DNA of 64,000 nucleotides from contig MU008155.1 of the NCBI GenBank assembly GCA_010909165.1, positions 806,001 through 870,000 on the forward strand, in the 5' to 3' direction. Shown here piece after piece: positions 1,700 through 40,749 of this stretch. Under the pieces are notes generated by a model, which was not told where the DNA came from, searched no databases, and worked only from the letters and a program-made list of their open reading frames with translations. The DNA comes from Anthoceros angustus. Taxonomy: Eukaryota > Plantae > Anthocerotophyta. The first letter of the stretch is position 1, and each line of letters starts with the position of its first letter. The translations under genes were made by a program, and so were the position numbers.

Positions 1700-2200
1700 G
1701 CAAGCATCAATGGCTGGGCAGCATAGGAGGAAATGTGCTTCATCCTCCACTAGCCCGGTTCTGGTAGCCCGGTTCTGGAGCATTGGCAGGTGCACCCTAG
1801 GCAATTGTTTTGGGCAAGGACCATCCTGAGTTGATGTGCCTTGGTGCGGAATCGAACAATTAACCTGGTGAGATCGGAAAGAAAGGGCTGTTGGAAATAT
1901 CGTTGGATCTGGTAGGTAGTGCTTTGGTGGACATGTTGAAGGTAGTGCAGCTTACTTGGCCCTGGCAAGGTTGGAGGCCATACCTTTCTAAGGAAAACAT
2001 TCTCAATATCGGTTTCCGTTATCTTGGCACCCAAATCTTTGGGGAGATCCCACCTGGCAAGCCAATTGGCTAAAGAGAGTAGCCAGCCCGAGAGGTGATT
2101 GATGCCATCTTCTGCTGAGAGTTGGCAAGCCTACCTGACGAGGGCAAAGTTTTCCATGATCCAAATGTTGTGTCTAAAATGGACACACTACTTCAGAGCT
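1700..2200 (-). mobile_element. Degenerate non-LTR retrotransposon (LINE, RTEX/L2-like) ORF2 C-terminus
   Basis: Minus-strand translation ...SGWLLSLANWL...SKLHYL...YQIQRYF...LIVRFRTKAHQLRM...C..C...(frameshift)VEDEAHFLLCCP matches the LINE terminal RFRTxxHxL / CxxC..VEDExHFLxxCP zinc-knuckle pattern. It has an internal stop, and a 14-nt duplication (tagcccggttctgg x2) shifts the frame. Confidence 0.65.
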
Positions 2201-2682
2201 TGTATCTCAGATGACATTTTTCGCTCTCATCCTCTTGTGTCAAACCCTAAACCATAAAAATAATTCAAATAAATATATAAATTAATTTTATATCGATGAA
2301 ATTATATAGAATATCGTATCCCATTGATGATACATGGACTATGATACGGTCCATTGCACACATGACATAAGTCTATATATACGCCAATTTTGGACCGGTA
2401 GTTCACGGGACCGTCGGTCCCCGAGAAAAATGAGGGACCGGGATCGGGAGCGGGATAAGGACCGGCAACTTCCGACCGCCAGCCCCGAACTAGTTAGAGA
2501 CCGGGACCGAGGCCGGGACGAAGTCAATCTGAAACCGGCACGTTCGCTAGTGCAGTGCACCGCCGGCCAGTATAAGAAAAGAAGAAGTCTACCGTATTAT
2601 AGAGCTCGAGGAAGATAACGTATCCAGTCCACCCTTTCTACGTCGGATGCAGCACTATCGTGTGTGGAGAGCCGAGAGCGAG

Positions 2683-2722
<40 letters not shown>

Positions 2723-2723
2723 G
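2683..2723. repeat. (CATGGG)n microsatellite, about 7 units
   Basis: Direct reading of six full and one partial CATGGG units. Confidence 0.95.
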
Positions 2724-3567
2724 TGACGATGATCATGCAAGCTCCCCTTGCGGGTCGAATGTCCCCGGGTGTGCAAAGCAACTTGGAAATAATAAAGCTT
2801 TTAGGTACCTAGTATCGATCGAGCATCCGTCAGGAAAAGAATAAACTATCTTACTGGTCAAGCCCGGAGGAGCGTTGCGTTTTGAACACTTGGAGGAAGC
2901 TCCGCAGTATCTTGCATGTGCTGCGAATGTGCTCCTAGAAAATTGGTACTGGGACGGTGCGGCCGCTCTACAATTGCCCTACCGTGGCCATTCTCGCCAC
3001 TGCTGGTTACCGGCATGTATAGACCTGCCGCTGGGCGTCGCAGGATGCTTGGGCTGCTGCTTGGCTGACTCGTCAATTCGCGTTGAGCAATGCCTCAGTC
3101 TTCGCCTTCCTCTGACGCGCCGCATTGGTGTCGTCTCAGCCTCTGCACAACAAAACTCGAGGATTGGCCTTATGGAAGCTCAGGGCAAGCTTTGTCGGCG
3201 TTTCTCTGCCGGTACGTGAGTCCTAAGCGCCGGCAGGGGCTCGCTGAATGCATGCGGGGGTCTCTTCCGCAAGGAATTTGAAAGGCTGAGGCCGGGGTGG
3301 CGGAGGAGCGGTCTTGTTTGCTTGCTGTGGAGGCTGTATCTGTACTTCTCCGAGGCAAGCATGAGATACTCGGAGCTGCCAGAAACGGGGAGCATGCGGA
3401 TTCCTCGGAATCGTTCGATATCGGGGAATCGGCACTTTGAGCAATTTAGGCCTCGGTCCGGAGCTGATCTTCCGAGGGAATTGCTGTCGGGTGCGGTGTA
3501 GCACGGCCGTTTCGAGATGGGACTGCCTTGACTGATGGGGGTCACGAGATTAGGTTTGTGACTCGCC

Positions 3568-6500
3568 ATGGCCAAGCGGAGGATTCCACCTATGGAGCGC
3601 TTCCTCGGGCCCTCCCACAGACTGATCTATGTGAACGACAGTGGCCCCACGGCGGATGTGTACAGTGACAATAAAATCTCCAACACCAAGTACAATTTGT
3701 TGAATTTTATTCCCAAGAATCTCTGGGAGCAATTCAGTCGGTTCATGAACCAGTACTTCCTGCTCATTGCCTGTTTGCAGCTATGGCCCCTCATCACGCC
3801 TGTGAGCCCGGTGAGCACATGGGGACCGCTTATTATCATTTTCGCAGTCTCTGCGTCCAAGGAGGCTTGGGATGATTACTATAGATACACGCAGGACAAG
3901 GTGGCAAATGAAAGGAGAGTATGGGTTGTGCAAAATGGCTTGAAAACCCAGATTCGGTCTCAAGACGTTCATGTGGGGGATCTCGTGTGGATCTCCCAGA
4001 ACGACGAGGTTCCCTGTGATATGGTGCTCTTGGGCACATCGGAGCCTAATGGTGTCTGTTATGTGGAAACTGCTGCTATAGATGGAGAGACCGATCTCAA
4101 AACTAGGTCTGTGCCTCTCCCTTGCACAGGTCTGACCAGCGACCTCTTGCACAAGGTGAAGGGTCTGATACAATGTCCCGGCCCAGATGCAGATTTGAGA
4201 AGATTCGATGGTAATTTGAGGCTATTTCCTCCATTCGTGGACAATGATTTTTGTCCTCTCACAGCAAATAACATATTGTTGCAGTCATGCACCATGCGGA
4301 ATACAGAATGGGCTTGTGGTGTTGCCGTGTACACAGGGAATGAGACGAAAGTTGGGATGAGCAAGGGCCTTCCAGAGCCAAAGCTGACTGCCGTAGACAG
4401 CATGATTGACAAACTGACCGCTGCAATTTTTGCTTTTCAACTGGTAGTTGTGCTCATTCTTGGGGTGGCTGGGAACATCTGGAGGGCTTGGGAGTCTCGA
4501 AAAATGTGGTTTCTGAAGTACCCCAAGCATACCCCGTGGTTTGAGTTTTTGGTGATTCCGCTCCGATTTGAGCTCCTTTCTTCCATTATGATCCCAATCT
4601 CTATCAAGGTCTCCCTGGATTTAGCAAAAGGTCTGTATGCCAAGTTCATTGACTGGGACCTGCATATGTATGATGAAAGGACTGATACACCCGCTGCTGT
4701 TGCTAATACTGGTATCAGTGAAGATCTGGGTCAAGTGGAATTTATCCTTACAGACAAGACTGGGACGCTAACTGAGAATATCATGCTGTTCAAAAGGTGC
4801 TGCATCAAAGGCACATCTTATGGTGGGCTATCTGGTGATGCTCTTACAGATTCCTTACTGACAAGAGCTGTTGGGCTTAAGGATCCAGATGTTGTAAAGT
4901 TCTTGATGGTCATGACTATGTGTAACACCGTGGTCCCCAGCAAAAGTGTGGAGGGAATTGTGTCCTACAAAGCACAGTCTCAGGATGAGGAAGCTTTAGT
5001 TAATGCAGCTTACCAGCTTGGCATGGTTCTGACGTACGTAGTTGGCTCGACTATTGAAGTTAGTTTCCTAGGAACAGTGCTGAAGTATGAGCTGCTGGAT
5101 GTTCTCGAGTTTACATCAGACAGGAAAAGGATGTCTGTGGTAATCCGTGATGCTGTGACAAGGAAGCTGATGCTGTTGACCAAAGGTGCTGATGAGGCAA
5201 TGTTGCCCTTTGCTCGAAGTGATCAGCTAGTCCGACCGGTAGCTGAGGTTTCTGAAAATTATGCAAGAACAGGTTTGAGAACCCTGTGCCTTGCATATCG
5301 TGACTTGAGTGAGGAGGAGTATCTGGGATGGTCATCTGAATTTCGGGCAGCGAGCAGCTCTACAACAGAGAGAGACTGGAAAGTTGCTGAGATCTGCCAG
5401 CGGTTAGAGAGAAATTTTGAGCTCCTTGGTGTAACAGGCATTGAGGATAAGTTGCAGGAAGGTGTCCCAGAGACCATAGAGACTCTGAGGAAGGCTGGAA
5501 TTAACTTCTGGATGTTGACCGGGGATAAGCATAGTACAGCAGTTCAAATTGCATTGGCTTGCAACTTGGTGCTGCCTGAACCACATGGTCACATCTTGCA
5601 CATTGAAGGGAAGACCCCGAATGAGGTGTCTGTCAGTCTGGAGAGGGTGCTACGCACTTTGCGCATTGCTTCAGTTGAGCACAAAGATGGAGCATTTGTT
5701 ATAGATGGTTTGGCTCTTGAAATGGCGCTGCAGCACCGCTATGATTCTTTTGTTGAGTTAACAATGCTTTCCAAGACAGCCATATGCTGTCGAGTGACCC
5801 CTTCTCAAAAGGCCCAGCTTGTGGACATGGTGAAGAGCTGTGATTATCGAACATTGGCCATTGGTGATGGCGGTAATGATGTTAAAATGATACAGGAGGC
5901 CCATGTTGGAGTGGGACTTAGTGGACATGAAGGTCTGCAAGCAGCAAGGGCTGCAGACTTCAGCATTGGGAAATTTAGATTTCTGAAACGACTCATATTG
6001 GTACATGGGCGATACTCATACATTCGGACCTCATTTCTTGCGCAGTATTCTATATACAAGTCTTTGCTCATCTGCTTCATCCAGATATATTTCTCTTTCC
6101 TTTCAGGATTAGCAGGAACAAGTCTTTTCAATTCCTTTAGTTTGATGGCCTACAACGTGGTATACACAAGCATACCAGTTATGATGGCAACTCTGGATAA
6201 GGATATAAGCGAGAAGACCGTTCTTCAGCATCCCCAAATTCTGTTTATTTGTCAAGCAGGGAGGATGATGAATCCGAGTACGTTTGCTGGGTGGTTTGCA
6301 CGAGCAGTTTTCCATGCAGGGGTCGTCTTTGTAGTGACTATTCATGTCTATGCGCACAGCAAAAGTGACACAGAAGAGCTGTCCATGGTTGCGCTTTCTG
6401 GTTGCATTTGGTTGGAGGCGTTTCTTGTTACTTTGGAAACAAACACTTTCACCATCTATCAGCTCGTTGCAATTTGGGGCAACCTTCTAGCATTTTACCT

Positions 6501-28400: not shown

Positions 28401-30472
28401 GCACGTCAAAGCCATGGTTTTCTAAGCTTTATTAATCTTGGTTTCCTTGGTGCAGATATCATGTGAGGAGAAGGCTGCTCTTGACAGGAACTCCCATTCA
28501 GAATAGCCTTCAAGAGTTATGGTCTCTTCTGAACTTCCTCCTGCCTGCCATATTCAACTCCAGTGCCAACTTTGAGGACTGGTTTAATGCGCCATTTGCA
28601 GACCGATCGGATATGTCTCTTACAGAGGAGGAACAGCTTCTTGTAATTCGCCGCTTACACCAGGTGAACAATCGTTCTGGATGTTGACTCTCAAGATCTT
28701 CTGTGGAGCTGCTGCTCGTTTACTGAAAAGTGGAAGTTTTTAATTAGGTTATTCGTCCTTTCCTATTGAGACGGAAGAAAGCAGAGGTTGAGAAGTTTTT
28801 GCCTAAGAAGAGTCAGGTTATCTTAAAATGTGATCTATCGACGTGGCAACGCATATACTACCAGCAAATCATTGACTCTGGGCGGGTTGGTTTGGATTCT
28901 GGTAAGATTTCAGCAATTCAATGTCAAGTAAATGATATATACAGTTTAGAGAGGTGGCTTGTCCTTGCAGGAATATGGTTATCTGCTGCTGATTCCTATA
29001 ACTACTCTATCTGGTTCAGATTCTGGAAGGTCAAAGGGGCTTCTAAACACTGCTATGCAGTTGAGGAAGTGCTGCAACCATCCTTTCCTATTCCTATCTG
29101 ATTATGACCCTAAACTGCGGGATGAGATTGTGCGATCTTCTGGGAAGTTTGAGCTGTTGGATAGGTTACTACCAAAGCTGAGAGCCACTGGTCACAGAGT
29201 TCTCTTATTTTCCCAAATGACTCGGTTGATGGATATTCTTGAGGAGTATTTGGAGTGGAATGGTTACAAGTACATGAGACTTGATGGAATGACTAAAACA
29301 GAGGATCGCGGTCCACTGCTGAGCCAGTTCAATGCACCAAACTCGCCTTATTTTATGTTCCTTCTTAGCACTCGAGCTGGAGGTCTTGGTCTCAACTTGC
29401 AAAGTGCTGATACAGTGATACTTTACGACATCGATTGGAACCCTCAGATGGATCAGCAGGCAGAAGACAGAGCACATCGCATTGGACAAAAAAAGGAGGT
29501 GCGGGTGTTTGTTTTGATAAGTGCTGGCACAATTGAAGAAGAAATATTGGAGCGAGCAAAATCCAAAATGGGGATTGATGCAAAAGTCATCCAAGCTGGC
29601 CTCTTCAACACGACTTCCACAGGTGAACAACAGCTGTACAGCACAGAATAGGATTTGCATTGTTTATGCAGTTTTCCCCCTCTCTCAATTGTCCTCATCT
29701 ATTGCTTTCTGCAGCTCAAGAGAGGCGAGATATGCTTGAGGAAGTAATGCGGAGGGGAGGTGATGCTTTGGGTGCGGATGTTCCAAGTGAGAGAGAAATT
29801 AATCGTCTAGCTGCTCGATCCGATGAAGAATTTGAGATATTTGAAAGGATGGATGCTGAAAGACGCAAGGCCGAGGGTTATCGCTCCAGGCTGATGGAAG
29901 AGCATGAGGTTCCGGAGTGGGTGTTCTTGCAACCTGACAAGACAAAGTTGGCGCAAGGTATTGAAGCTAATGGTGATCCAGGGAAGAGGTTGAGGAAGGA
30001 AGTACTCTACACTGATGTTCTCAGTGATTCTCAGTGGTTGAAAGCTATAGAAGAAGGGGACGATGTTTCTGAAGCTGTGAAAGCACAACTAACAAAGAGA
30101 AAGGAAAATAAAGCAAGGGCATCTGCAGTAGGTGACAGCTATGGCATTGCGAGCCCTGATGTTGATGACTCTATGGAATGGGTGGAAGCCAATAGGTCCA
30201 AGGAGGTACAATTGAAGAGGAAAAGGCCTACTGTGCCTGATCCGGAGGAGAATCAGATAAAAAAGCTGAAGATTCACAAGCGAGATGTCGGACAGGGTGT
30301 TTCACGTCCGCTGGATGATTCGCCAGAAGAAAGATTGCCCAAGATCCTTCTCAAGAAGGTGAAAACAGAAAATTGGCTTGGGTCAAGGGGCAAGAGATCT
30401 AAGAAGGGCCAGAATGGACCTGATGACCAAAGCAACGGCACTGATGACGAGCCCTCAAGCCAGCTTTCTTGA
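25496..30472 (+). CDS. CHR12: SNF2-family chromatin-remodelling ATPase, CHR12/CHR23 (MINU) type, multi-exon
   Basis: N-terminal [17 protein letters not shown]/post-HSA ([27 protein letters not shown]), [81 protein letters not shown] and the SnAC region [14 protein letters not shown]. No bromodomain. Confidence 0.92.
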
Positions 30473-31417
30473 GTCTGTTGGTAGGTACATTCTTGTATCA
30501 TAATTGATTGGCAAAAGGTTGCCGACTTCATTTGCTGATAGTACCTCCTCATCGGTAGTCCCAATTGATCCTTTGGCGGGCTCAGCGGAATGTATACAGC
30601 AGAATGTATACGTGGCTGGCACGCGGCTCATCACCCTATTTGCTCTCAGCGCAAGAGGCCCACTGAAAAACTGTGTGTGGCCTCTAGCGGTGATGAAGTT
30701 TCATCAAAGTGAAGAAGTTTAATTAAATATCAAATCATTTTCCTGCCTTCTAGTGTCTTGGGTATTACCAATATAAGTTGCCTTCATGCTTTCGTGAACT
30801 GTGACCAAGGTCATCAACCCAATGGTTGGGCCTGACTCCCGTTGCCCCTTGAATTGAATCAGCGGCGGGTGGGAATCATGCAACTTCCATCACCAGGAAG
30901 TGATGATGCCGCACTTTCTTGAGGTTGGCTTTGGCGTAGGAGGAAAGTGCTGTCCATCAGTGCCCCGCCATGCGTGCCTGGCATCATATTCTCCAGAGCA
31001 ACAACCCAATTGGCCTTATCCGGTTTTAGATGAGTAAAGAGAACCCCCAACTGCCGTCTACCAGCTGTGGACCTGTGGTTCCCCTCGGGGCCGGAAAGGG
31101 ATGGGAACTGGAAACACAAATGTGATAACGGTTCACATCCCGCTGTTTGTATGGTGGTGACGGTCCATTCGAGGAATGCTGCTCAGCAGGACGTGTTGCG
31201 CGCTTCTGACTAATCGGTCCATCAAACGTACAATCTTCTCTGAACCGCAAGCCGTTAATGTGCTGCTTCTTCTGCTGTGTACTGCATGAGCTGTTTTTTG
31301 CGGTAAGGTGTAATCAGTCAGCTAGACTTTGGCATGGGTCGGTGCGGAAGACATTTCTCCGGCTTCTACTCTCGCTTCTGCTGCATGTCGTAGTCCCACG
31401 ATATTCAAGTGGTTCGT

Positions 31418-33449
31418 ATGGGTGCAGGGGTACCACCCCCACGGTATCTCAGGCTGTACGCAACGATGGCAGTCCAGGACGATTCCACTTATCTGAGGAA
31501 TGTCATGGAGATAGTTCCAGGCAAAACGAACGTAGGGTAAAGGTCCAGTCCTTGTATCTCGTCCTCTGGAGCTGCAACTGGGTGTCTCCCCTCCATCTCC
31601 ATCAGGAACAGCAGACTGCGGATTGGCCCTGAACTTGTAGGCATCAGCTGAACAGACCCTTTGATGCAGATGGGTAGGCACGGGAGTGATGGGACAAGCT
31701 ATGTGTGGTCACTTACAAGCAGCTGGCTACAATGTGACTGTTTTCAATCGAACAGCCAGGTGTGGTGTCAAATTATAACGCATCACTTAAACTCAGCAGG
31801 GTGAGATGTTTTGTCATGAGATCTTTTGGTATTGCACACCAGGAAGGCTGAAGTTTTGGTCAGCAAAGGAGCAACTTTAGTGAACTCACCGAAAGTTGTG
31901 GCTGAGAGGAGCGACATTGTGTTCACCATTGTTGGGTACAGCAAGCTGGTCTCTAGTTGTGCACTGTTCAGAGAAGTGCATTTCTACCATCTCTTACAGT
32001 TCTCTCACGACTTATTCCTTCTGCAGCTACCCCTCAGATGTACGAGATGTGATACTTGGAGAAGATGGCATTTTGCAAGGGCTTCGACCCGGTGGGATTG
32101 TAAGTCCGCCGAATCTGGATCATGTTTTCATAAGATCCTTTTGGTGTGAACATCTCATATGACCAGCTGTTTCCCCTATTAAAGGATTGGTACATGCTGT
32201 GTTGTCGTTTGTAGATCGTGGATATGACAACAAGTGAACCTTCACTTGCTCGTCAAATTTTTGCTGCAGCTCAGGAAAAGTAAGGGTTTCGCTGCAGTAC
32301 CTCTCTTTGTTGATGCAGAGCGATGAGACCCTGCTTCATGCGTTTTACATGTGACTTTCATGGAAGGGGGTGCGATGCAGTGGATGCACCAGTATCTGGA
32401 GGGGACAAAGGAGCTAAGGGGGGTACTTTGGCCATCATGGCTGGCGGCCGCCAGGAAACAGTGAGCATCAATGTCATCAATTTAGGAAAGGGTCAAACAC
32501 TGTTGCATGTGTGAATCTCTAGATCTCGTGTGTCGGCTACAGGTCAAAGCACTGGGACCACTCTTTCAATGTCTGGGCACACCCACATATCTAGGCCCAG
32601 CAGGATCAGGCCAAAGCTGCAAATTAGCAAATCAGGTGCTGGTGTTGAAATTCCGTTAGTGATGCACATCCTGGATCTGCATTTTTCTAGTTGGAAAGCT
32701 GTGTCTCATGAAGGTTATATCGAGACTGTTTCAGATAACAATTGCCTCAACAATGGTGGGGCTGGTTGAGGTGGGTAACAACCAACTAGATTTTCTCACT
32801 TTGAATAGTCTTCTGGATTTTGTGACCATTTGAGATAACGAAGCGGAGAAACTGATATTGCAGGGAATGCTATTTGCTCACAAGGCTGGACTTGATGTCA
32901 CCACGTGAGTGCGTTATCTTCTTTAAGGACATTAGGAGATCCATTTCAGACTAGGCACCCTAAACCATGCATGGGGGTTCGGACGCCTTGCTGACAGGTA
33001 TCTGCAAGCAATATCTGGTGGAGCTGCTGGTTCCAAGTCTTTAGAGCTGTACAGCGGACGAATTCAGAGTCGGGACTTTGCTCCAGGTGACTGGGCTGTG
33101 TGAGTGTTTTGCCTGTTTGCAACTCCCGCCTACTACAAGTATGAAGCTGACTCATTTCTCTGTGGCAGGGTTCTACGTAAAACACTTTGTGAAAGATTTG
33201 GGCATCTCCCTGGAAGAGTGCCGTCAGATGGGGATCTCACTACCTGGGCTTGCCTTGGTTATTTTCTCACTCAGCACCCTCATTTCTGTCTTACAGTTGT
33301 CGTATCGGAAATCAATTCTGAGCAACGTTTGATTGCAGGCACAGCAGCTGTATGTTTCATTGCAAGCCTTCGGTGAGGGCGATTTGGGCACCCAAGCTCT
33401 GGTACTATCTCTCGAACGCCTGAACAACACGACACTGCCCAAAATTTAG
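31418..33449 (+). CDS. 3-hydroxyisobutyrate/6-phosphogluconate dehydrogenase-family protein (At4g29120-like), multi-exon
   Basis: Exon 1 [18 protein letters not shown]...IVPGKTNVG is spliced to [15 protein letters not shown]...VFNRT, followed by [15 protein letters not shown], catalytic [28 protein letters not shown] and [14 protein letters not shown] introns restore the frame. Confidence 0.9.
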
Positions 33450-34952
33450 CTAGTACCTCTTCTTTCTGTCCGGTCTCCAGATCTGTCTACTTACTTACAC
33501 CAGCCCTATGCCCAACATGATCCACTACCTTGACGCCAGAGAAGAACATGAACCATAACTGGTGGACAAATCGTGGCGGAAGGCATGTGGTTGTCATATA
33601 AGAAATTTGAGATGATCAGTAAAAACGTTTGAATCCTCGGAGCTCACCTGTTTGGATCAGCCCATCGTCGGCCTTGGTTAAAATCTCCAGTAGTTAACCT
33701 CAAAACGACTGGGCCTTCTGGCCATTTTCTTTTATAGAAATTCGCGGGAAATTATTCTTAGCCTTTTTTGGGTTGCATTCAATGGTTTTTAATTATGGAA
33801 AATATAAAACATGCTCCTACAAGCTCTCACTCGCCTGTTTTGAATTGAACAGGAGCGGTTCCCCAGCAAACTAGGTACTCAATTTGAGTAGGTCCGTCGT
33901 CCTGGAGTTAATGTCGACATGCACTGCCATATCTTGACAATCATACGACACCCACGCATCACCTCTTCATTCCTCTAGGGTTGTAAGGCTCTGAGTCTCG
34001 GAGTCTTGTAGCGTAGAAGCGTCGCATCTTTTAGGGTTGTGGGCTGAGAAGCGTCGACTCTTGTTGCGTCAGGGGTTCCCGAAGGGGGGGCCTTTGGAGT
34101 AGGGCTCGTTCGGACGCTCTGCTCTGCCTCTTGCCTGCTTGTGGACATCTTCAGCTGCCCGGGGTGGTGCTGGAGTTTGACGATGAGGAGGCTTAGGTTT
34201 TTTGCAGCTCAGGATTTTCCTTTGTAGGTTAGGGTTCTCGTGTGACTTAGGCTTTCAAGTTATCGGCTTGTCTGCGCCTTGCCTGTCGATGTATGTATCA
34301 AAAGAAACTACTGATGTCCCTGCGGACAGATGTGGAAACTTGTTGCTGACTGCAATCTCCTGTGTGGTGTGGAATATGTTATGTCCGTTTGCTTATGCAT
34401 GGAACCTTAACGTCGCCGTGTGGTGGAAGGGGCTTGCTGGCCGGTGATGAATTGTGATCTTACCTACATTGCCTGAACCGCTATGTGGAGAACACCATGG
34501 ATTACTGAGGCCTTGTCGAAGCTGTTGCGTGAAGTGTGTGATATCTGTGGTGCAGACCGGAGGCAATGATGATTGTTGTCTTACCTATTTTGTGAGAGCG
34601 TATATCTGTGATCACTACCAACCAATAGATCCTCCTGAGCCTCCGGTCGTGAACTACTGCTCGAGTCCGTCTGCGTAGTCTGATCCTGGAGTATTTTATT
34701 CCTTCGTGCTGGTCAAGGCTGTGGACGTGCCATAATTGTAACTGATTTTCATTGACGCGGATAAATTACCGCAGTAACCGAATCTTATGATTCACTTTTC
34801 TGCAACCGTGCAATCCGTGAGTTTGCTGCACTCGCCTCTCGTGTTTCATGCCTCTTTGTCCTGTTGATAGCCGGAAGGGGACCTCCAAGGCTTGGACGCA
34901 GCACTTGTGCAGGGGAGCTTTATACGGTCGGTTACAAAGCCGGCATCCTGTG

Positions 34953-35987
34953 ATGCCGCACATCCGAGTCCACCTGTTCGCCGGATTTCCCTTGCTTATC
35001 TTCCTCCTGCTCTCGACACGGGCCATTTCAGCGTTCCATTTGGTCTCCAAGGCGAAGCCGAGTGCCGTGGAAGAGGAGGTGCTGTATCCCACGGTTGAAG
35101 TGCTGAATGGAGCAGATACTGTGTGGCAGGTTCCCGAACATTGCAAGGCAGTGCTGTTTATAGCGCATCCCAGCGGCGCCGACCCTTTCAGGTTCTGGGA
35201 TCCCCACCCTAGGTGCCCCCAGTGCACGGGCTACCCGGAGCATCGGGCTCTGGTTCAGGCTGCCTTGTCGTGGGGATACGCGGTCATTGCAATCGGCAGC
35301 TTGGAGCATGAATGGCAGTACCGGGACCTGGACAGCTCGCGGGATTTCCAAAATGTGGAGTCCATTTTAGGGAGCTGGACTGTTGAGCGCGGGTTGGAGA
35401 AGCTTCCTCTTACCGCCCTGGGGATTTCCCTAGGCGGGATTTTCTTGGCTGCAGCTGCTGATCGGGTCGCCTTCGACGCGGTGGGGCTGATGATCTCGTC
35501 CGGTTTGGAGGGAGGCTTCCGGGGCGTGGGCTCCTTCCCGCCCGTTCTCTTTCTGCACATGCCTAAGGACTGGAGGATCCAGCCTGCGGTGGCGGCAGCA
35601 GTAGGAGAGCTGCAGGCCCAGGGCATTCCGGCTGCGGCAGTCGAGTGCCTGGAGTTTCCTGTCCACGCAGGTCTGTTCGCTGAACGGATTCATGAGATTG
35701 ATGGGGAGCAGTCTGCGAAGATTCGAGTTGCGTTGCAGGATGTGGGAGTTCTGGACGGTGCAGGGTATGTGGTGGATGTCTACACGCAGAGAGACTGGAG
35801 GAGCGTTGTGAGGGAGGTGGTGAGAGAGATATCATCGGAACTGGAGCTTACTGTGGAGCGCATTGCACAGGAACTGAATCTTGCCTATGCCTTTCATGCC
35901 ACAACTAGCTTGAAATCACGCGAGCTGTTTCAGTGGTTGGACTCGAAAGGGCAGATGCTTTCCCAGCTGGAAGAGGAACTGAGGTAG
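34953..35987 (+). CDS. Uncharacterised plant alpha/beta-hydrolase-fold protein with N-terminal signal/TM segment, single exon
   Basis: Open 344-codon ORF with a hydrophobic N-terminus (FAGFPLLIFLLLS), a GxSxG-like GISLGG, PPVLFLHMPKD and a C-terminal ELNLAYAFH. An upstream ATG lies at 34848. Confidence 0.75.
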   Translation: MPHIRVHLFAGFPLLIFLLLSTRAISAFHLVSKAKPSAVEEEVLYPTVEVLNGADTVWQVPEHCKAVLFIAHPSGADPFRFWDPHPRCPQCTGYPEHRALVQAALSWGYAVIAIGSLEHEWQYRDLDSSRDFQNVESILGSWTVERGLEKLPLTALGISLGGIFLAAAADRVAFDAVGLMISSGLEGGFRGVGSFPPVLFLHMPKDWRIQPAVAAAVGELQAQGIPAAAVECLEFPVHAGLFAERIHEIDGEQSAKIRVALQDVGVLDGAGYVVDVYTQRDWRSVVREVVREISSELELTVERIAQELNLAYAFHATTSLKSRELFQWLDSKGQMLSQLEEELR

Positions 35988-36054
35988 ATCGGTATGCGCT
36001 GTGACCACAATGGTGGATGCACAGGCGCAGGGACAAGATCGAACCTGTGCTCAG

Positions 36055-37157
36055 TTACACAGCTTTTTTCACCTCCTGCAGCGTCTTCTTGTCACGCAAC
36101 CCGAACATCTCTTCGAATAAGTACTCCCGCAGCCAGGACGGAGCGTAATAGAGGACGTAGAAGAGTGTCGAAAGGTGTCCAAAAACCAAGGTTCTGGGAC
36201 TGTTCGTTTTTTGGACAGCTTCAAGGATTTTCCGAGCCAAATCCGCACTCGGTGTTGATTTTGGTGACTGAGAGCCGACAGCCCGCTTTTCAATGACAGG
36301 GTCATACGGCTGGTACAGCTTCAATCCAGGCAGATTTTGTTTCGACCTGATTGCCTGCTTTCCTATGTTGGAAATGATGGCCCCTGGTGCAACGAGGATG
36401 ACTTGTATGTCGAACGGTTTCAGCTCCAACCTGTGACACCAGGAACTAATCAGAGGTTCTGGAAATGCGTTCATGTTCAGGTTTTCACATCAACAACCGT
36501 AGAGTACCTCAAAGTCTCGGTGAGAGAGTGCACTGCTGCTTTGGTCGACGCATATACACCTGCCCAGGGGGCAGGACAAAAGGCAGAGATGCTACCTATG
36601 TTCACAATCTTCCCTTTCCGTCTGGCTGCCATGTGCGGCACCACTGCTCGAATGAGGGATAGTGGACCTGCATGGTGGTGGATCAGGACAACCAATCTAT
36701 CTTGCGACAAATAATTGCAGCAGAGGCAAGGTATACATATGCCAGTGCAACAGCTTGTCCGCATATTGCTCGAAGAAACAGGCACTAGTTTCGAAACACA
36801 ACCTGGAGAAGAGGTATGTTGTCACCTACCAAACACATTGGTCTTGTAGCACCTCTCCAGCATGTCGTGGGGAACCTCAGCAAGAGGCCCGATGCACTGT
36901 GTCCCAGCATTGTTAATGAGCACATCTATGTGCCCAAACTTGGCCGCCACAGCTTCCACCGTCTCCTCAATCACAGCCTGTTCTGCAGTCACATCAAGCT
37001 GGAGCAACTCCACGTCTGGATACTGCTCCAACGTCGTCATCCATTCCACGGAGAGGTCAGTTGCCACAACCTTGAAGCCTGCAGCTGCAAACACGAGGGC
37101 CAGGGCATTGCCGATGCCACCGTCTGAGCACCCCGTGATCAGCACAACCTCCTTCAT
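36055..37157 (-). CDS. Short-chain dehydrogenase/reductase (At5g10050/AYR1-like), copy 1, 3 exons
   Basis: Exons 37157-36830, 36667-36508 and 36430-36055. Motifs [17 protein letters not shown] and YASTK. Intact frame, GT-AG introns. Confidence 0.93.
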
Positions 37158-37349
37158 CACGTCGATCGTGTGGTAGCTGGCCAAGCCGCACTCGGGTTGC
37201 AATTAGGTGGGTTCAATTAGGTGTTTATGTACACGAAGGCAAGAACTATCCGCACCTACAAAGTGGATCCTCTTCTCACTGGCCCGCGAATATTCCGTGA
37301 AGTGCCAGAGTCATGGCGCTGACAAGTGTCCTCACCTCCGCTCATTCTG

Positions 37350-38180
37350 TAGATTCAGCTGGCTCATATGAGTGGAAAAGTATCAGTCCCACAGGCATCT
37401 CAAGCTGTACGCAACGATGGCAGCCCAGGAGGATTCCACTTATCTGAGGAATGTGAGAAGCGATTTCCTGGCAAAACGAAAGTCCCTAGGGTAATTACAG
37501 ATCCAGTCCGTGAACATCTCCTACTGGAGCTGCAACTGGGTGTCTCTTTTCCTCCCTCCAATTCCATCAGGACCACCAGACTGCCGAACTGGTAGGGAGA
37601 AGCTGATGAACTTGAATGCAAATGAATAGGCAAGGAGTGATGGAACTTTCACAAGCAGCTGGCTACAATGAAACCCTTGTCCATCGTATAGCCAGGTACG
37701 ATGGAGAAGGTCTAATTATAGCTCACGACGTAGGTGAGCAGGATTCACGTCGGATGTTGTGTGTCATGAGCAATGGCACCACTTTGGTACACTCACAGGA
37801 AGTTGTGGCTGAGAGGAGCAACACTGTTATCACCATTGTCGGGAACAGCAAGCTCGTGTCTCCATTTCCGTGGTTTAGGACGTACATTTCACCATTTCCT
37901 ACGTTTCTCTTACCACTGATTCCTTCTGCAGCTACCCATCAGAAAATCTACGAGCTATTATACTCCGAGAGAATGAGCATTTTGCAAGGTGTTCCACCTG
38001 GTATGTCCCCCGAATCTGGATCATGTTCTCCTGAGATCCTTTATGGTGTTGAGGGAACGGTGGGGAGGCGGGGAAGAGGGAGGCTACTTTGGCCCTCATT
38101 GTTGGTGGCCGCCAAGAAGCAGTGAGCTTCCATCTCATCACTTTAGAAAGGCTCAAGTCCTGTTGCACGTCTGAAAGCTG
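37350..38180 (+). pseudogene. Truncated, frameshifted duplicate of the HIBADH-like gene (5' half)
   Basis: Clear nucleotide homology to 31410-32515 (e.g. gctgtacgcaacgatggcag...ttccacttatctgaggaatgt, aagttgtggctgagaggagc, tactttggcc...ggccgcca). Internal deletions and lost splice sites. Confidence 0.88.
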
Positions 38181-38184
38181 AGGC

Positions 38185-38624
38185 ATCGTCCCGGCTGCAG
38201 CTGCTGACCGGATTGTTCAACGGGGCGGGGCTCATGAACTCGTCCTGCAGCATCCTTGCTGCAGGGTCAGGGCATTCCGGCCGCTGCAATTGAGTGAATG
38301 GATTTCGCGCTCCAATCAGGTCTATTCTCTGGAGACGATTTCATGAGATAGATGAGGAGCAGGTCGCGTTGCGTTGCAGGATGTGGGAGTGGATGTCTAT
38401 GCGCGGGGACTGGAGGAACGTTTGCTAGGGAGCTGGTGAAAGCGACTTCACATGAACTGGAGCTTACATTGGAGCGCATAGCACAGGAACTGAATGTTGG
38501 CCTACGCCTTTCATGCCACAACAAGCTTGAAGTCGCGCTAGCTGTTTCAGGGATTGGAAGTCAAAGGGCGGATGCTTTCCCAGCTGGAAGAGGAACTGAG
38601 TGCTCACAGCACGATGCAGACTAA
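38185..38624 (+). pseudogene. Degenerate 3' fragment of the alpha/beta-hydrolase duplicate
   Basis: Homologous to 35445-35990 (ggctgcagctgctga, ggcattccggc, ttgcgttgcaggatgtgggagt, ELELTLERIAQELN). Frameshifted, 5' part missing. Confidence 0.88.
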
Positions 38625-38649
38625 ACGACAGGATCGCAGCAGTGCCCAG

Positions 38650-39792
38650 TTATACAGCTTTTTTCACCTCCTCTAGCGTCTTCTTGTCATGCAACCCGAA
38701 CATCTTCGCGAACAAGTACTCCCGCAGCCAGGAAGGAGCGTAGTAGAGGACGTAGAAGATGGTTGAAAGATGGCCGAACACCAGGTTGCGGGGACTGTTC
38801 TTTTTCAGGACCGCTTCGAGGGTCTTCCGAGCCAATTCCGCACTTGGTGTTGATTTCGATGATTGAGAGATGACTGCCCGTTTGTGAATAACTGGATCAT
38901 ACGGTTGGAACAGCTTCAATCCTGGCAGACTCTCTTTTGACCTGATTGCCTGCTTTCCCATGTTGGAAGTGATGGCCCCTGGTGCAACGAGGATGACCTG
39001 TATGCCGAACGGTTGCAGCTCCAACCTGTGATACCAGGAACAGGTCAGGGTCAAGAAACGCGTGCATGCACAGGTTTTAACATGGACAACCTGCATGCAG
39101 AGTACCTCAGTGTCTCGGTAAGAGAATGCAGTGCGGCTTTGGAGGACGCATAAACCCCTGCCCAGGGGGCAGGACAAAAGGCAGTGATGCTACCGACGTT
39201 CACAATCTTCCCTTTCCGTCTGGCTGCCATATGCGGCACCACTGCTTGAATGAGGGATAGTGGACCTGCAAGGAGGCGGATCAGATCGTCACACCAGCAC
39301 CAGGACTGGCACTCTATCTGGCAACAATTGCAATTGCAAGCAGAGACAAAGGTAGGCATATCCTATCCCAGTGCAACCGCATGTCCACTAATTTGCCCTA
39401 GACACTTCTTCCTTCTCAGCTAGTACCCAAACACAGGCGAAGGAAGATGCATGTAGTCACCCACCAAACACGTTGGTCTTGTAGCACCTCTCCAGCATGT
39501 CTTGCGGAACCTCAGCCAGAGGCCCGATACACTGTGTCCCAGCATTGTTTATGAGCACATCTATGTGCCCAAACTTGGTCACCACAGATTCCACCGTCTC
39601 CTCGATCACAGCCTGCTCTGCAATCACATCCAGCTGGAGCAACTCCACGTCCGGATGCTGCTCCAACGACTTCATCGATTCCAGGGAGCGGGCGGTTGCC
39701 ACAACCTTGAAGCCTGCATCTGCAAACACTAGAGCCAGGGCATGGCCGATGCCACCGTCTGAGCACCCCGTGATCACCACAACCTCCTTCAT
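38650..39792 (-). CDS. Short-chain dehydrogenase/reductase (At5g10050/AYR1-like), copy 2, 3 exons
   Basis: Exons 39792-39465, 39265-39106 and 39025-38650, with the same intron positions as copy 1. Motifs [17 protein letters not shown] and YASSK. Intact. Confidence 0.93.
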
Positions 39793-40749
39793 CACCTCGA
39801 TTGTGTGGAAACAGGCCAGCCCACAATCGTGTCCAGTTAGGTGTATGTTTCTACAGCATGTACATAGACGAACACGGACATGGTCTAAGTTGGAAAAAAT
39901 GGCCGGGTAAATATTTGGCAAACTCTGTTGAAGTTCGTCTCCGGAGATGCAGGATTAAACCTGGCCGATCGGGCCGATATTTGAGTTTTACAATTACCCG
40001 TCCTTCCTTCGATATAAGAGCTGTTAGGCAACACTCTTTCAGGTTTGGCTCCCTCTGCCTCCGGGGTAGCGATTTCTGATCGTGTTGCAACAAAATTGTG
40101 CCGGGCTCGGTCGCGGAAGCCTTTTCTGCAGGCTGTAACGGAGCTTCTCTCGCGGGCGTTGGTAGGGATGGCATTTTCCAGCAGGATGATGTAGTGGATG
40201 ACCGACGAGGGAGTTGATGGAAGGGAGCACTGGGCAGGCAGAAGCAGGTGATGCTGGCAGAGTGAGAGCGCTTGAAAGTGCGGGTGAGTGCACTGCTTGT
40301 GGTGTGGGGATGTGTGCTCCTCTGCTCTTGTGCTGTGCAGCCCTAAACGGTAGAGTGTGCAATGAGAGCTGGCGGTGAGATATTGTCATTCTGCCGGGAA
40401 ACTGTCGTCGGCGGGGGGAATCGGGGTTGGAGCCAGACCGTCAGAATTTCAACTTCTGCTTCGCGTCGCCGTCCCCGCCAGCTTCTTATGCTGCCGGCCC
40501 CTGTCTTGTATCGTGACAAGCTTCATGTGGTTGTGGGCAAGCAAGCGCAGAAAATCCGCACCCAGCTCACACGACAGGAGAGCTGGGCGGCAGGAGCAGG
40601 AGCTCCAGGGCAAGAATTCGAGCTCGCCGTTCCTGTCCTCGTTGCTCTCTTCCACACGCATTGTGATCAGGAAAGTTTCCTTATGATTCAAGAAATCTGC
40701 AACGGACGTACCTCTGCCGGCATTTTAAAAGGTTTGGTGGGCGAGAGGG

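Follow-up and report, generated by a model that had tools for sequence, protein, structure and literature searches.

This locus raises the question of whether a gene duplication has been followed by a change of cofactor in one of the two products. Within a 64,000-nucleotide stretch of contig MU008155.1 of the hornwort Anthoceros angustus (hereafter the window), two tandem SDR genes differ at the residues concerned by the SDR cofactor fingerprint rule (Kavanagh et al. 2008; PMC2792337), one copy possessing the NADP(H)-type and the other the NAD(H)-type pattern. As argued below, the best reading of these sequences is that copy 1 has probably shifted toward NAD(H) preference.

Gene models for both copies were rebuilt from sequence. 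Both lie on the minus strand and encode 287 amino acids each, in three exons whose lengths (328/160/376) and GT-AG intron phases are the same, with no internal stops, so that the two intact three-exon SDRs with shared intron positions described in the initial annotation are borne out. Of the 287 residues, 40 differ between the copies (86% identity), as do 96 of the 864 bases. In both, exon 1 (E ~3e-21) and exon 2 (E ~1e-13) match the Pfam family PF00106 (adh_short). In copy 1, the first exon spans Met1 to the first base of codon 110 and carries the glycine motif, strand beta2 and the NNAG motif. Both copies have TGCSDGGIG as their classical-SDR glycine motif, which contains an additional residue, a trait of the whole subfamily, and N82-N83-A84-G85, N107, S135, Y148 and K152 are all present in both.

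Table 1. Coordinates of the two SDR copies, their duplication units and neighbouring genes, numbered from the first base of the window.
Feature	Positions	Strand	Content or evidence
Duplication unit A	31403..37209	.	beta-hydroxyacid-dehydrogenase-like gene, 379-aa ORF, SDR copy 1, 52 bp 5' flank
Intact beta-hydroxyacid/6PGDH-type dehydrogenase exons	31670..32660	+	PF03446 E 1e-10; gene ends not defined
379-aa ORF, convergent with copy 1	34848..35987	+	open reading frame
SDR copy 1 exon 3, including stop codon (PG motif, family-specific C-terminal region)	36055..36430	-	
SDR copy 1 exon 2 (Ser135, Tyr148, Lys152)	36508..36667	-	gene model, Pfam adh_short
SDR copy 1 exon 1	36830..37157	-	Pfam adh_short E 3e-21
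SDR copy 1 codons 34-35, GAC CTC	37053..37058	-	Asp-Leu (derived, NAD-type fingerprint)
Unaligned junction between units A and B	37210..37352	.	alignment of units
Duplication unit B	37353..39843	.	collapsed version of unit A (four blocks align at ~70-80% identity), SDR copy 2 intact
Dehydrogenase-like gene (beta-hydroxyacid type), eroded remnant	37353..38175	+	matches 31403-32147 and 32418-32515
379-aa ORF 3' part, eroded remnant	38182..38620	+	matches 35436-35501 and 35609-35987
SDR copy 2 exon 3, including stop codon	38650..39025	-	
SDR copy 2 exon 2	39106..39265	-	gene model, Pfam adh_short
SDR copy 2 exon 1	39465..39792	-	Pfam adh_short E 3e-21
SDR copy 2 codons 34-35, GCC CGC	39688..39693	-	Ala-Arg (ancestral, NADP-type fingerprint)

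The two copies lie in two duplication units (Table 1). The intact dehydrogenase of unit A possesses a GTGVMG Rossmann motif and the motifs DAPVSGG...GTLAIMAGG. Copy 1 had been described as lying beside intact dehydrogenase and hydrolase genes; the intact dehydrogenase and the 379-aa ORF do adjoin it, and only their remnants are found in unit B, but the hydrolase label was abandoned, as the ORF has no family match in Pfam or NCBIfam. The unaligned junction forms the new upstream region of copy 1 and may act as its promoter; next to it, in head-to-head orientation, comes the dehydrogenase remnant with its 5' end. The ancestral 5' flank survives in copy 2; copy 1 has nothing of it beyond -52 bp, which casts some doubt on its expression. 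In the nearest relative (contig L001), a single SDR adjoins SABATH-type methyltransferase genes, and no neighbours are shared with the window.

At codons 34 and 35, copy 1 encodes Asp-Leu and copy 2 Ala-Arg, with one base change in each codon, as initially annotated. The accompanying claim that the copies differ exactly at the fingerprint needs qualification, since 40 residues differ in total; however, among the 56 columns conserved in at least 80% of 34 full-length relatives, columns 34 and 35 are the only ones at which the two copies differ. Several lines of evidence place these residues at the beta2 specificity positions, as had been proposed. Counted from the final Gly of the glycine motif, they are residues +18 and +19. 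P0152 is the nearest full-length relative, and its AlphaFold model (pLDDT 95.8) was used in place of models of the copies themselves; there, the equivalent of residue 34 is the last residue of beta2 and that of residue 35 is the first of the following loop. Exon 1 of copy 1 aligns best with solved SDRs that place D34, without a gap, on the Asp at the beta2 end, and these D-type matches include 4nbw (VVAWDLA), 4nbu (VVIADFN) and the 3-hydroxybutyrate dehydrogenase 6zzq (VVISDMN). The best solved matches to exon 1 of copy 2 are of the x-Arg type, namely 3un1 (VVATSRS), ElxO and NADPH-sorbose reductase. The NCBIfam model for 3-hydroxybutyrate dehydrogenase (TIGR01963) scores copy 1 at 66.7 bits vs 60.9 for copy 2, and the best-matching model, PRK05693, gives 82.2 bits for copy 1 vs 88.7 for copy 2. 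Copy 2 shows the NADP(H)-type 'cP2' pattern (A34-R35, that is, a basic loop residue after a non-acidic beta2 end), which copy 1 does not; copy 1 shows the NAD(H)-type 'cD1d' pattern, with D34, L35 and a C10-S11-D12-G13 stretch lacking Arg or Lys.

The polarity of this difference was established by outgroup comparison and by counting changes on the tree. Arg is found at position 35 in 350 of 352 aligned domains of relatives (163 of 165 in a smaller survey), while Asp occupies position 34 in a single one, P0025, which retains Arg35; Asp34 and loss of Arg35 occur together in none of the 352. The two copies are sisters (support 99/96) and group with P0152, then with P0153, Marchantia P0027 and Populus P0024, inside a plant clade (98/92), with a single change to Asp on the tree. 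Because the relatives nearly all possess Arg35, none combines both changes and the copies are sisters, A-R (or S-R) is clearly the ancestral state of the family, and D-L is derived in copy 1. This agrees with the initial annotation, in which copy 2 was ancestral and copy 1 had gained the Asp and lost the Arg. The ATSRS motif that it gave for At5g10050-type proteins is indeed common among the angiosperm relatives in the survey.

On the basis of the tree, from whose alignment Arabidopsis At5g10050 itself is absent, and of the source names, both copies belong with the plant At5g10050/AYR1-like proteins, designated SDR368C. The nearest plant relatives, from Populus, Marchantia paleacea, Helianthus and Corchorus, bear names of this family (At5g10050; yeast AYR1-like 'NADPH-dependent 1-acyl-DHAP reductase-like'). 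Both copies share with it the TGCSxGGIG and NNAG motifs, the catalytic N-S-Y-K residues and the C-terminal extension, and copy 2 also the A/S-R fingerprint; copy 1 departs from it by D-L, where 350 of 352 relatives have Arg and 351 of 352 lack Asp. Nothing more than 62% identical to either copy was found in protein collections by homology searches, by an exhaustive search of representatives or by exact look-ups of both exon-1 ORFs, although such blanks are weak evidence, as the word-indexed search also missed the protein P0002.

How would a shift in preference have come about? A lineage-specific tandem duplication of ~5.9 kb would have generated the two plant SDR368C-family genes. Copy 2 retained the ancestral flank, Ala34-Arg35 and a slow rate of change, with Arg35, in the loop after beta2, predicted to bind the 2'-phosphate of NADP(H). 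In copy 1, the acquired Asp34 would form hydrogen bonds with the hydroxyls of the adenine ribose in NAD(H) and repel the 2'-phosphate, as in classical SDRs, and Arg35 has been replaced by Leu, a hydrophobic residue such as follows the Asp in D-type SDRs. Both belong to a cluster of derived substitutions at residues 34-41 (five of the 24 polarised to copy 1, p=0.02), predicted to line the adenosine pocket. Most likely, copy 1 would then encode a working enzyme that now prefers NAD(H) to NADP(H), and it would therefore probably draw on another redox pool of the cell, usually running as an oxidation.

Known systems offer points of comparison. Like NAD(H)-dependent SDRs of the cD1d type, for example the 3-hydroxybutyrate dehydrogenase above, copy 1 possesses an Asp at +18 followed by a hydrophobic residue; unlike these, it lies phylogenetically within an NADP-type family, its Asp is secondary, and its use of NAD(H) is a prediction. 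Judged by motif spacing, L36 of human 17beta-HSD1 and T38 of mouse lung carbonyl reductase would be equivalent to position 34, the last beta2 residue before the loop Arg, which is changed to Asp in the L36D and T38D mutants as in copy 1. Both mutations move the preference from NADP(H) to NAD(H) (PMC2871135 for L36D; PMC5817062 for T38D). These are single mutants made in the laboratory, in which the Arg was kept and efficiency was lost, whereas in copy 1 the change is natural, the Arg is replaced and four to five more changes lie nearby. In L36D, catalytic efficiency falls ~30-fold, and replacement of the analogous loop Arg in other SDRs lowers activity with both cofactors (PMC2871135). Because both changes cost activity elsewhere, an Asp fingerprint is no guarantee of an efficient NAD(H) enzyme.

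The main alternative is a relaxation of constraint on copy 1 as a redundant duplicate, with D-L harming NADPH binding without allowing efficient use of NAD(H) and leaving a gene that is weak, subfunctionalised or slowly decaying. Site by site, 24 changes are polarised to copy 1 vs 11 to copy 2 (~2.2:1, p=0.04), an asymmetry that fits this alternative, as does a maximum-likelihood branch ~8x longer, although its 8.5:1 ratio was not taken at face value given the site-by-site figure. The dN/dS analysis that had been called for gives a local omega of ~1 in codons 30-50, which likewise fits relaxed constraint. The directed neofunctionalisation proposed in the initial annotation thus goes beyond these data, in which copy 1 is simply the faster-evolving copy. 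The same may be said of the missing 5' flank, of the decay of the other two genes of unit B, showing that decay does happen at this locus, and of the cost of loop-Arg loss noted above. However, copy 1 still has an intact ORF and four intact splice sites after a divergence of dS ~0.31 between the copies, and its overall omega is 0.37-0.52, significantly below 1 under every allocation of changes, even when all non-synonymous changes are charged to copy 1. As a whole gene, copy 1 is under purifying selection. It retains 53 of the 56 conserved columns, including the glycine motif, NNAG and N107-S135-Y148-K152, and deviates only at 34, 35 and 227, the last in common with copy 2. Were its 24 changes random, ~4.7 conserved-column changes would be expected; beyond the shared 227, two are observed, and these are the cofactor pair, now carrying residues typical of D-type SDRs. 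On balance, I regard relaxed constraint as rather unlikely. Separately, third-position divergence is lower in exon 1 (p=0.005); gene conversion was considered as a cause of the low exon-1 dS and rejected, the longest identical tract being 33 nt (p=0.89).

It could also be that the fingerprint is not decisive in the SDR368C family, with both enzymes using the same cofactor or having dual specificity, and D-L shifting affinity only modestly. Sequence-based prediction of cofactor preference has known exceptions, the extra residue in the glycine motif (TGCSxGGIG) means that the geometry may depart from that of textbook SDRs, and P0025 suggests that an NADP-type Arg does not preclude an Asp before it. 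I nevertheless consider this improbable, since the P0152 model puts both residues exactly at the end of beta2 and in the next loop, the Arg, too, is gone from copy 1, and 17beta-HSD1 (1fdt), the closest solved fold to the SDR368C-type family (none of whose close members has a solved structure), has its preference inverted by the equivalent L36D alone (PMC2871135). Least probable, and very much so, is that copy 1 has recently fallen silent, its ORF being intact for want of time to decay. The replacement of its promoter region at the duplication junction would fit such silencing, as would the lack of a match to either copy in the protein collections; but copy 2 is equally absent from these, making the absence uninformative on expression, and the junction is as old as the duplication itself (dS ~0.31), with purifying selection acting on copy 1 since. 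A functional copy 1 with a changed preference thus remains the reading to which I give most weight.

Cofactor preference sets the redox pool of an SDR, and hence its direction in the cell. Well-polarised natural switches occurring soon after duplication are therefore test cases for the evolution of specificity, and they reveal the accompanying changes by which the efficiency loss of single-site mutants made in the laboratory is offset. The two proteins here, one ancestral and one derived, are encoded next to each other and are 40 residues apart, in a family without an assigned function in plants (PMC3541173), one of whose members, At5g10050, is found enriched at lipid droplets (PMC12712439). 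The mechanism is already a textbook one, and this pair would be a new instance of it, illustrating rather than overturning known principles. Tentatively, and with more doubt than confidence, it may be proposed that in a hornwort lineage one of two tandem duplicates has undergone a natural NADP-to-NAD switch at two residues, which became fixed and has been maintained by selection, together with remodelling of the adenosine pocket. This would give a reductase/dehydrogenase pair acting on the same substrate, possibly at the lipid droplet, with copy 1 perhaps driven by a duplicated promoter, that of the neighbouring dehydrogenase gene.

The two SDR copies are complete classical short-chain dehydrogenase/reductase genes in tandem, with shared exon lengths (328, 160 and 376 nt), GT-AG introns of identical phase (162 and 77 nt in copy 1 versus 199 and 80 nt in copy 2) and an uninterrupted 287-residue reading frame in each. 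Exons 1 and 2 of either copy match Pfam adh_short. This agrees with the initial annotation, which had described two intact three-exon genes with matching intron positions, and its reading of codons 34–35 and their coordinates was exact. The Asp-Leu versus Ala-Arg difference at the NAD/NADP fingerprint (residues 34–35) is confirmed, but the statement that the copies differ exactly there is too strong, since 40 residues in all distinguish the two proteins (86.1% identity; 88.9% for DNA).

Features of the tandem duplication, in window coordinates
Feature	Position	Strand	Basis or remark
SDR copy 1, exons 1–3	36830-37157, 36508-36667, 36055-36430	minus	rebuilt from window sequence
SDR copy 2, exons 1–3	39465-39792, 39106-39265, 38650-39025	minus	rebuilt from window sequence
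Copy 1 codons 34–35, GAC CTC (Asp-Leu)	37053-37058	minus	sequence
Copy 2 codons 34–35, GCC CGC (Ala-Arg)	39688-39693	minus	sequence
Unit A: dehydrogenase gene, 379-aa ORF, SDR copy 1	at least 31403-37209		homology blocks
Unit B: collapsed copy of unit A, intact SDR copy 2	at least 37353-39843		homology blocks
Beta-hydroxyacid/6-phosphogluconate-dehydrogenase (6PGDH)-type gene, multi-exon, intact (unit A)	31403-33400	plus	PF03446; GTGVMG, DAPVSGG motifs
Dehydrogenase remnant, frame-broken (unit B)	37353-38175		homology to unit A gene
379-aa ORF, convergent with SDR copy 1	34848-35987	plus	open frame
Eroded partial copy of 379-aa ORF	38182-38620		unit B remnant
Junction, copy 1 upstream region	37210-37352		followed by duplicated dehydrogenase 5' end, head-to-head

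The glycine motif, TGCSDGGIG, has one residue more than the textbook TGxxxGxG, a feature shared by the entire subfamily, and residues 34 and 35 lie at +18 and +19 from its last glycine, G16. A structural model was generated for the nearest full-length relative, P0152 (42-sequence alignment, pLDDT 95.8). In this model strand beta2 spans P0152 residues 36–41 (window numbering plus 7), so that the Ala at the position-34 equivalent closes the strand, and the Arg at the position-35 equivalent opens the loop that leads into the next helix. Kavanagh et al. 2008 (PMC2792337) describe this arrangement: NAD(H) specificity comes from an acidic residue that immediately follows the second strand and binds the 2' and 3' hydroxyls of the ribose. 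Among solved structures, the best matches to copy 2 exon 1 are x-Arg enzymes (3un1 VVATSRS, ElxO, clavulanic acid dehydrogenase, NADPH-sorbose reductase), whereas those to copy 1 exon 1 are of the Asp type: 4nbw (VVAWDLA), 4nbu (VVIADFN) and 6zzq (VVISDMN, 3-hydroxybutyrate dehydrogenase). D34 falls without a gap on the Asp of all three, which, like copy 1 with Leu35, carry a hydrophobic residue after it, and the NCBIfam profile scores of the two copies move in the same direction. The proposed assignment of residues 34–35 to the beta2-end specificity positions is thus well supported by motif spacing, modeling and alignment.

Both copies belong to the At5g10050 family, SDR368C, which is found across Viridiplantae without an assigned function (PMC3541173); the Arabidopsis At5g10050 protein is strongly enriched on root lipid droplets (PMC12712439). 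Relatives in Populus, Marchantia, Helianthus, Corchorus and others are named [quoted passage not shown] or "RED1-like". When copy 2 exon 1 was used for an exhaustive HMMER search, the 150 nearest cluster representatives gave 165 aligned domains, with Arg35 in 163 and Asp34 in one. Widening the survey by ∼100 further plant sequences, to 352 domains, brought these counts to 350 and one, and none of the 352 combined Asp34 with loss of Arg35. The window sequence has clear land-plant affinity, and in a maximum-likelihood tree of 36 full-length proteins the copies are sisters (99/96) adjoining P0152 (98/92) inside the plant clade, with one single change to Asp required. Searches of protein collections and exon-1 look-ups found no ortholog above 62% identity. 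Sister copies within the plant clade, together with a near-invariant Arg35, argue that the duplication is lineage-specific and lend good support to Ala-Arg as the ancestral state, kept by copy 2 as originally suggested, and Asp-Leu as derived in copy 1.

Among the 352 domains, the only other Asp at the beta2 end is in P0025 (L002:132-548, L003:132-548; Logan assemblies SRR28098538 and SRR28098536), which reads VIATDRS with the Arg kept and has adh_short exon-like ORFs downstream; this may be a case of another plant moving independently towards NAD use. For the nearest relative, P0002/P0152, the genomic contig (L001:132-831 and 2042-3764; Logan SRR33208241) carries a single SDR368C-like gene beside SABATH-type methyltransferase (PF03492) ORFs, and showed neither a tandem SDR nor neighbours in common with the window.

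Coding sequences joined from the window exons served for the tree, the local alignments, translation and dN/dS. Between the copies, dN is 0.069 and dS 0.309 (omega 0.22). Polarised against the four nearest outgroups, 24 of the 40 differences arose along the lineage of copy 1, 11 along that of copy 2, and 5 are unresolved (p = 0.04). The maximum-likelihood terminal branches are more unequal (0.128 versus 0.015), and I take the site count as the safer rate figure. With synonymous changes split evenly, omega of copy 1 is 0.37–0.52, and charging all non-synonymous changes to this copy still leaves it significantly below 1 (p 1e-4 to 6e-3). Copy 1 keeps 53 of the 56 columns conserved at ≥80% in the family, including the glycine motif, D55, NNAG, N107, S135, Y148, K152 and the PG motif; it deviates only at 34, 35 and 227, the last in common with copy 2. 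Five of its 24 derived changes cluster within residues 34–41 (permutation p = 0.02), the beta2 end and start of the next helix, which line the adenosine pocket. This pattern fits a cofactor pocket remodelled in a targeted way while the rest of the enzyme stayed constrained. Local omega is, however, ∼1, and local relaxation would look alike, so the "directed neofunctionalisation" initially proposed is not demonstrated. The chief rival, that copy 1 is under relaxed constraint with impaired cofactor binding, I consider rather unlikely, at less than half the weight of a shift towards NAD(H). Third-codon-position divergence is lower in exon 1 (0.119; 36830-37157) than in exon 3 (0.266; 36058-36430; Fisher p = 0.005), which could reflect old partial gene conversion or 5'-end synonymous constraint; no long identical tract was found between the copies (longest 33 nt, p = 0.89).

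Thr38 of mouse lung carbonyl reductase and Leu36 of human 17beta-HSD1 are presumably equivalent to position 34, going by motif spacing. The closest solved fold to the SDR368C family is 17beta-HSD1 with NADP+ (1fdt). The carbonyl reductase T38D mutant, with Asp at the beta2 end, is among those listed in PMC5817062 as switching towards NADH, and L36D inverts the cofactor preference of 17beta-HSD1, with a ∼30-fold loss of catalytic efficiency (PMC2871135). Replacing the loop Arg in several SDRs lowers activity with both cofactors, because this residue also stacks on adenine (PMC2871135). These two effects are the chief caveat here. The further substitutions near the fingerprint of copy 1 could be compensatory.

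Unit B, the half of the duplication with copy 2, matches unit A, which holds copy 1, in four homologous blocks (∼70–80% identity), and retains the dehydrogenase gene and 379-aa ORF only as eroded remnants. Copy 1 was described as lying beside intact dehydrogenase and hydrolase genes; the dehydrogenase is indeed intact in unit A, but the hydrolase label finds no support, as the ORF matched no Pfam or NCBIfam family at any of the thresholds used; a G-I-S-L-G-G stretch in it resembles a nucleophile elbow. Upstream of the duplicated block lie exons of a SNF2-type chromatin remodeller (28959-30472, plus strand; Helicase_C E 5e-26, SnAC domain E 5e-11). Homology of the SDR 5' flanks ends 52 bp upstream of either ATG (37209, 39843), which, given the tandem arrangement, places copy 2 next to the original upstream flank. 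The region upstream of copy 1 is the junction, and this copy has therefore changed both fingerprint and regulatory context. The 5' end of the dehydrogenase remnant faces the start of copy 1, and one may speculate that copy 1 uses the duplicated dehydrogenase promoter.

These observations are best explained by copy 1 having shifted towards NAD(H), a reading that is reasonably probable. The mechanism is textbook, and copy 1 would add a clean new case to a type of event already known.
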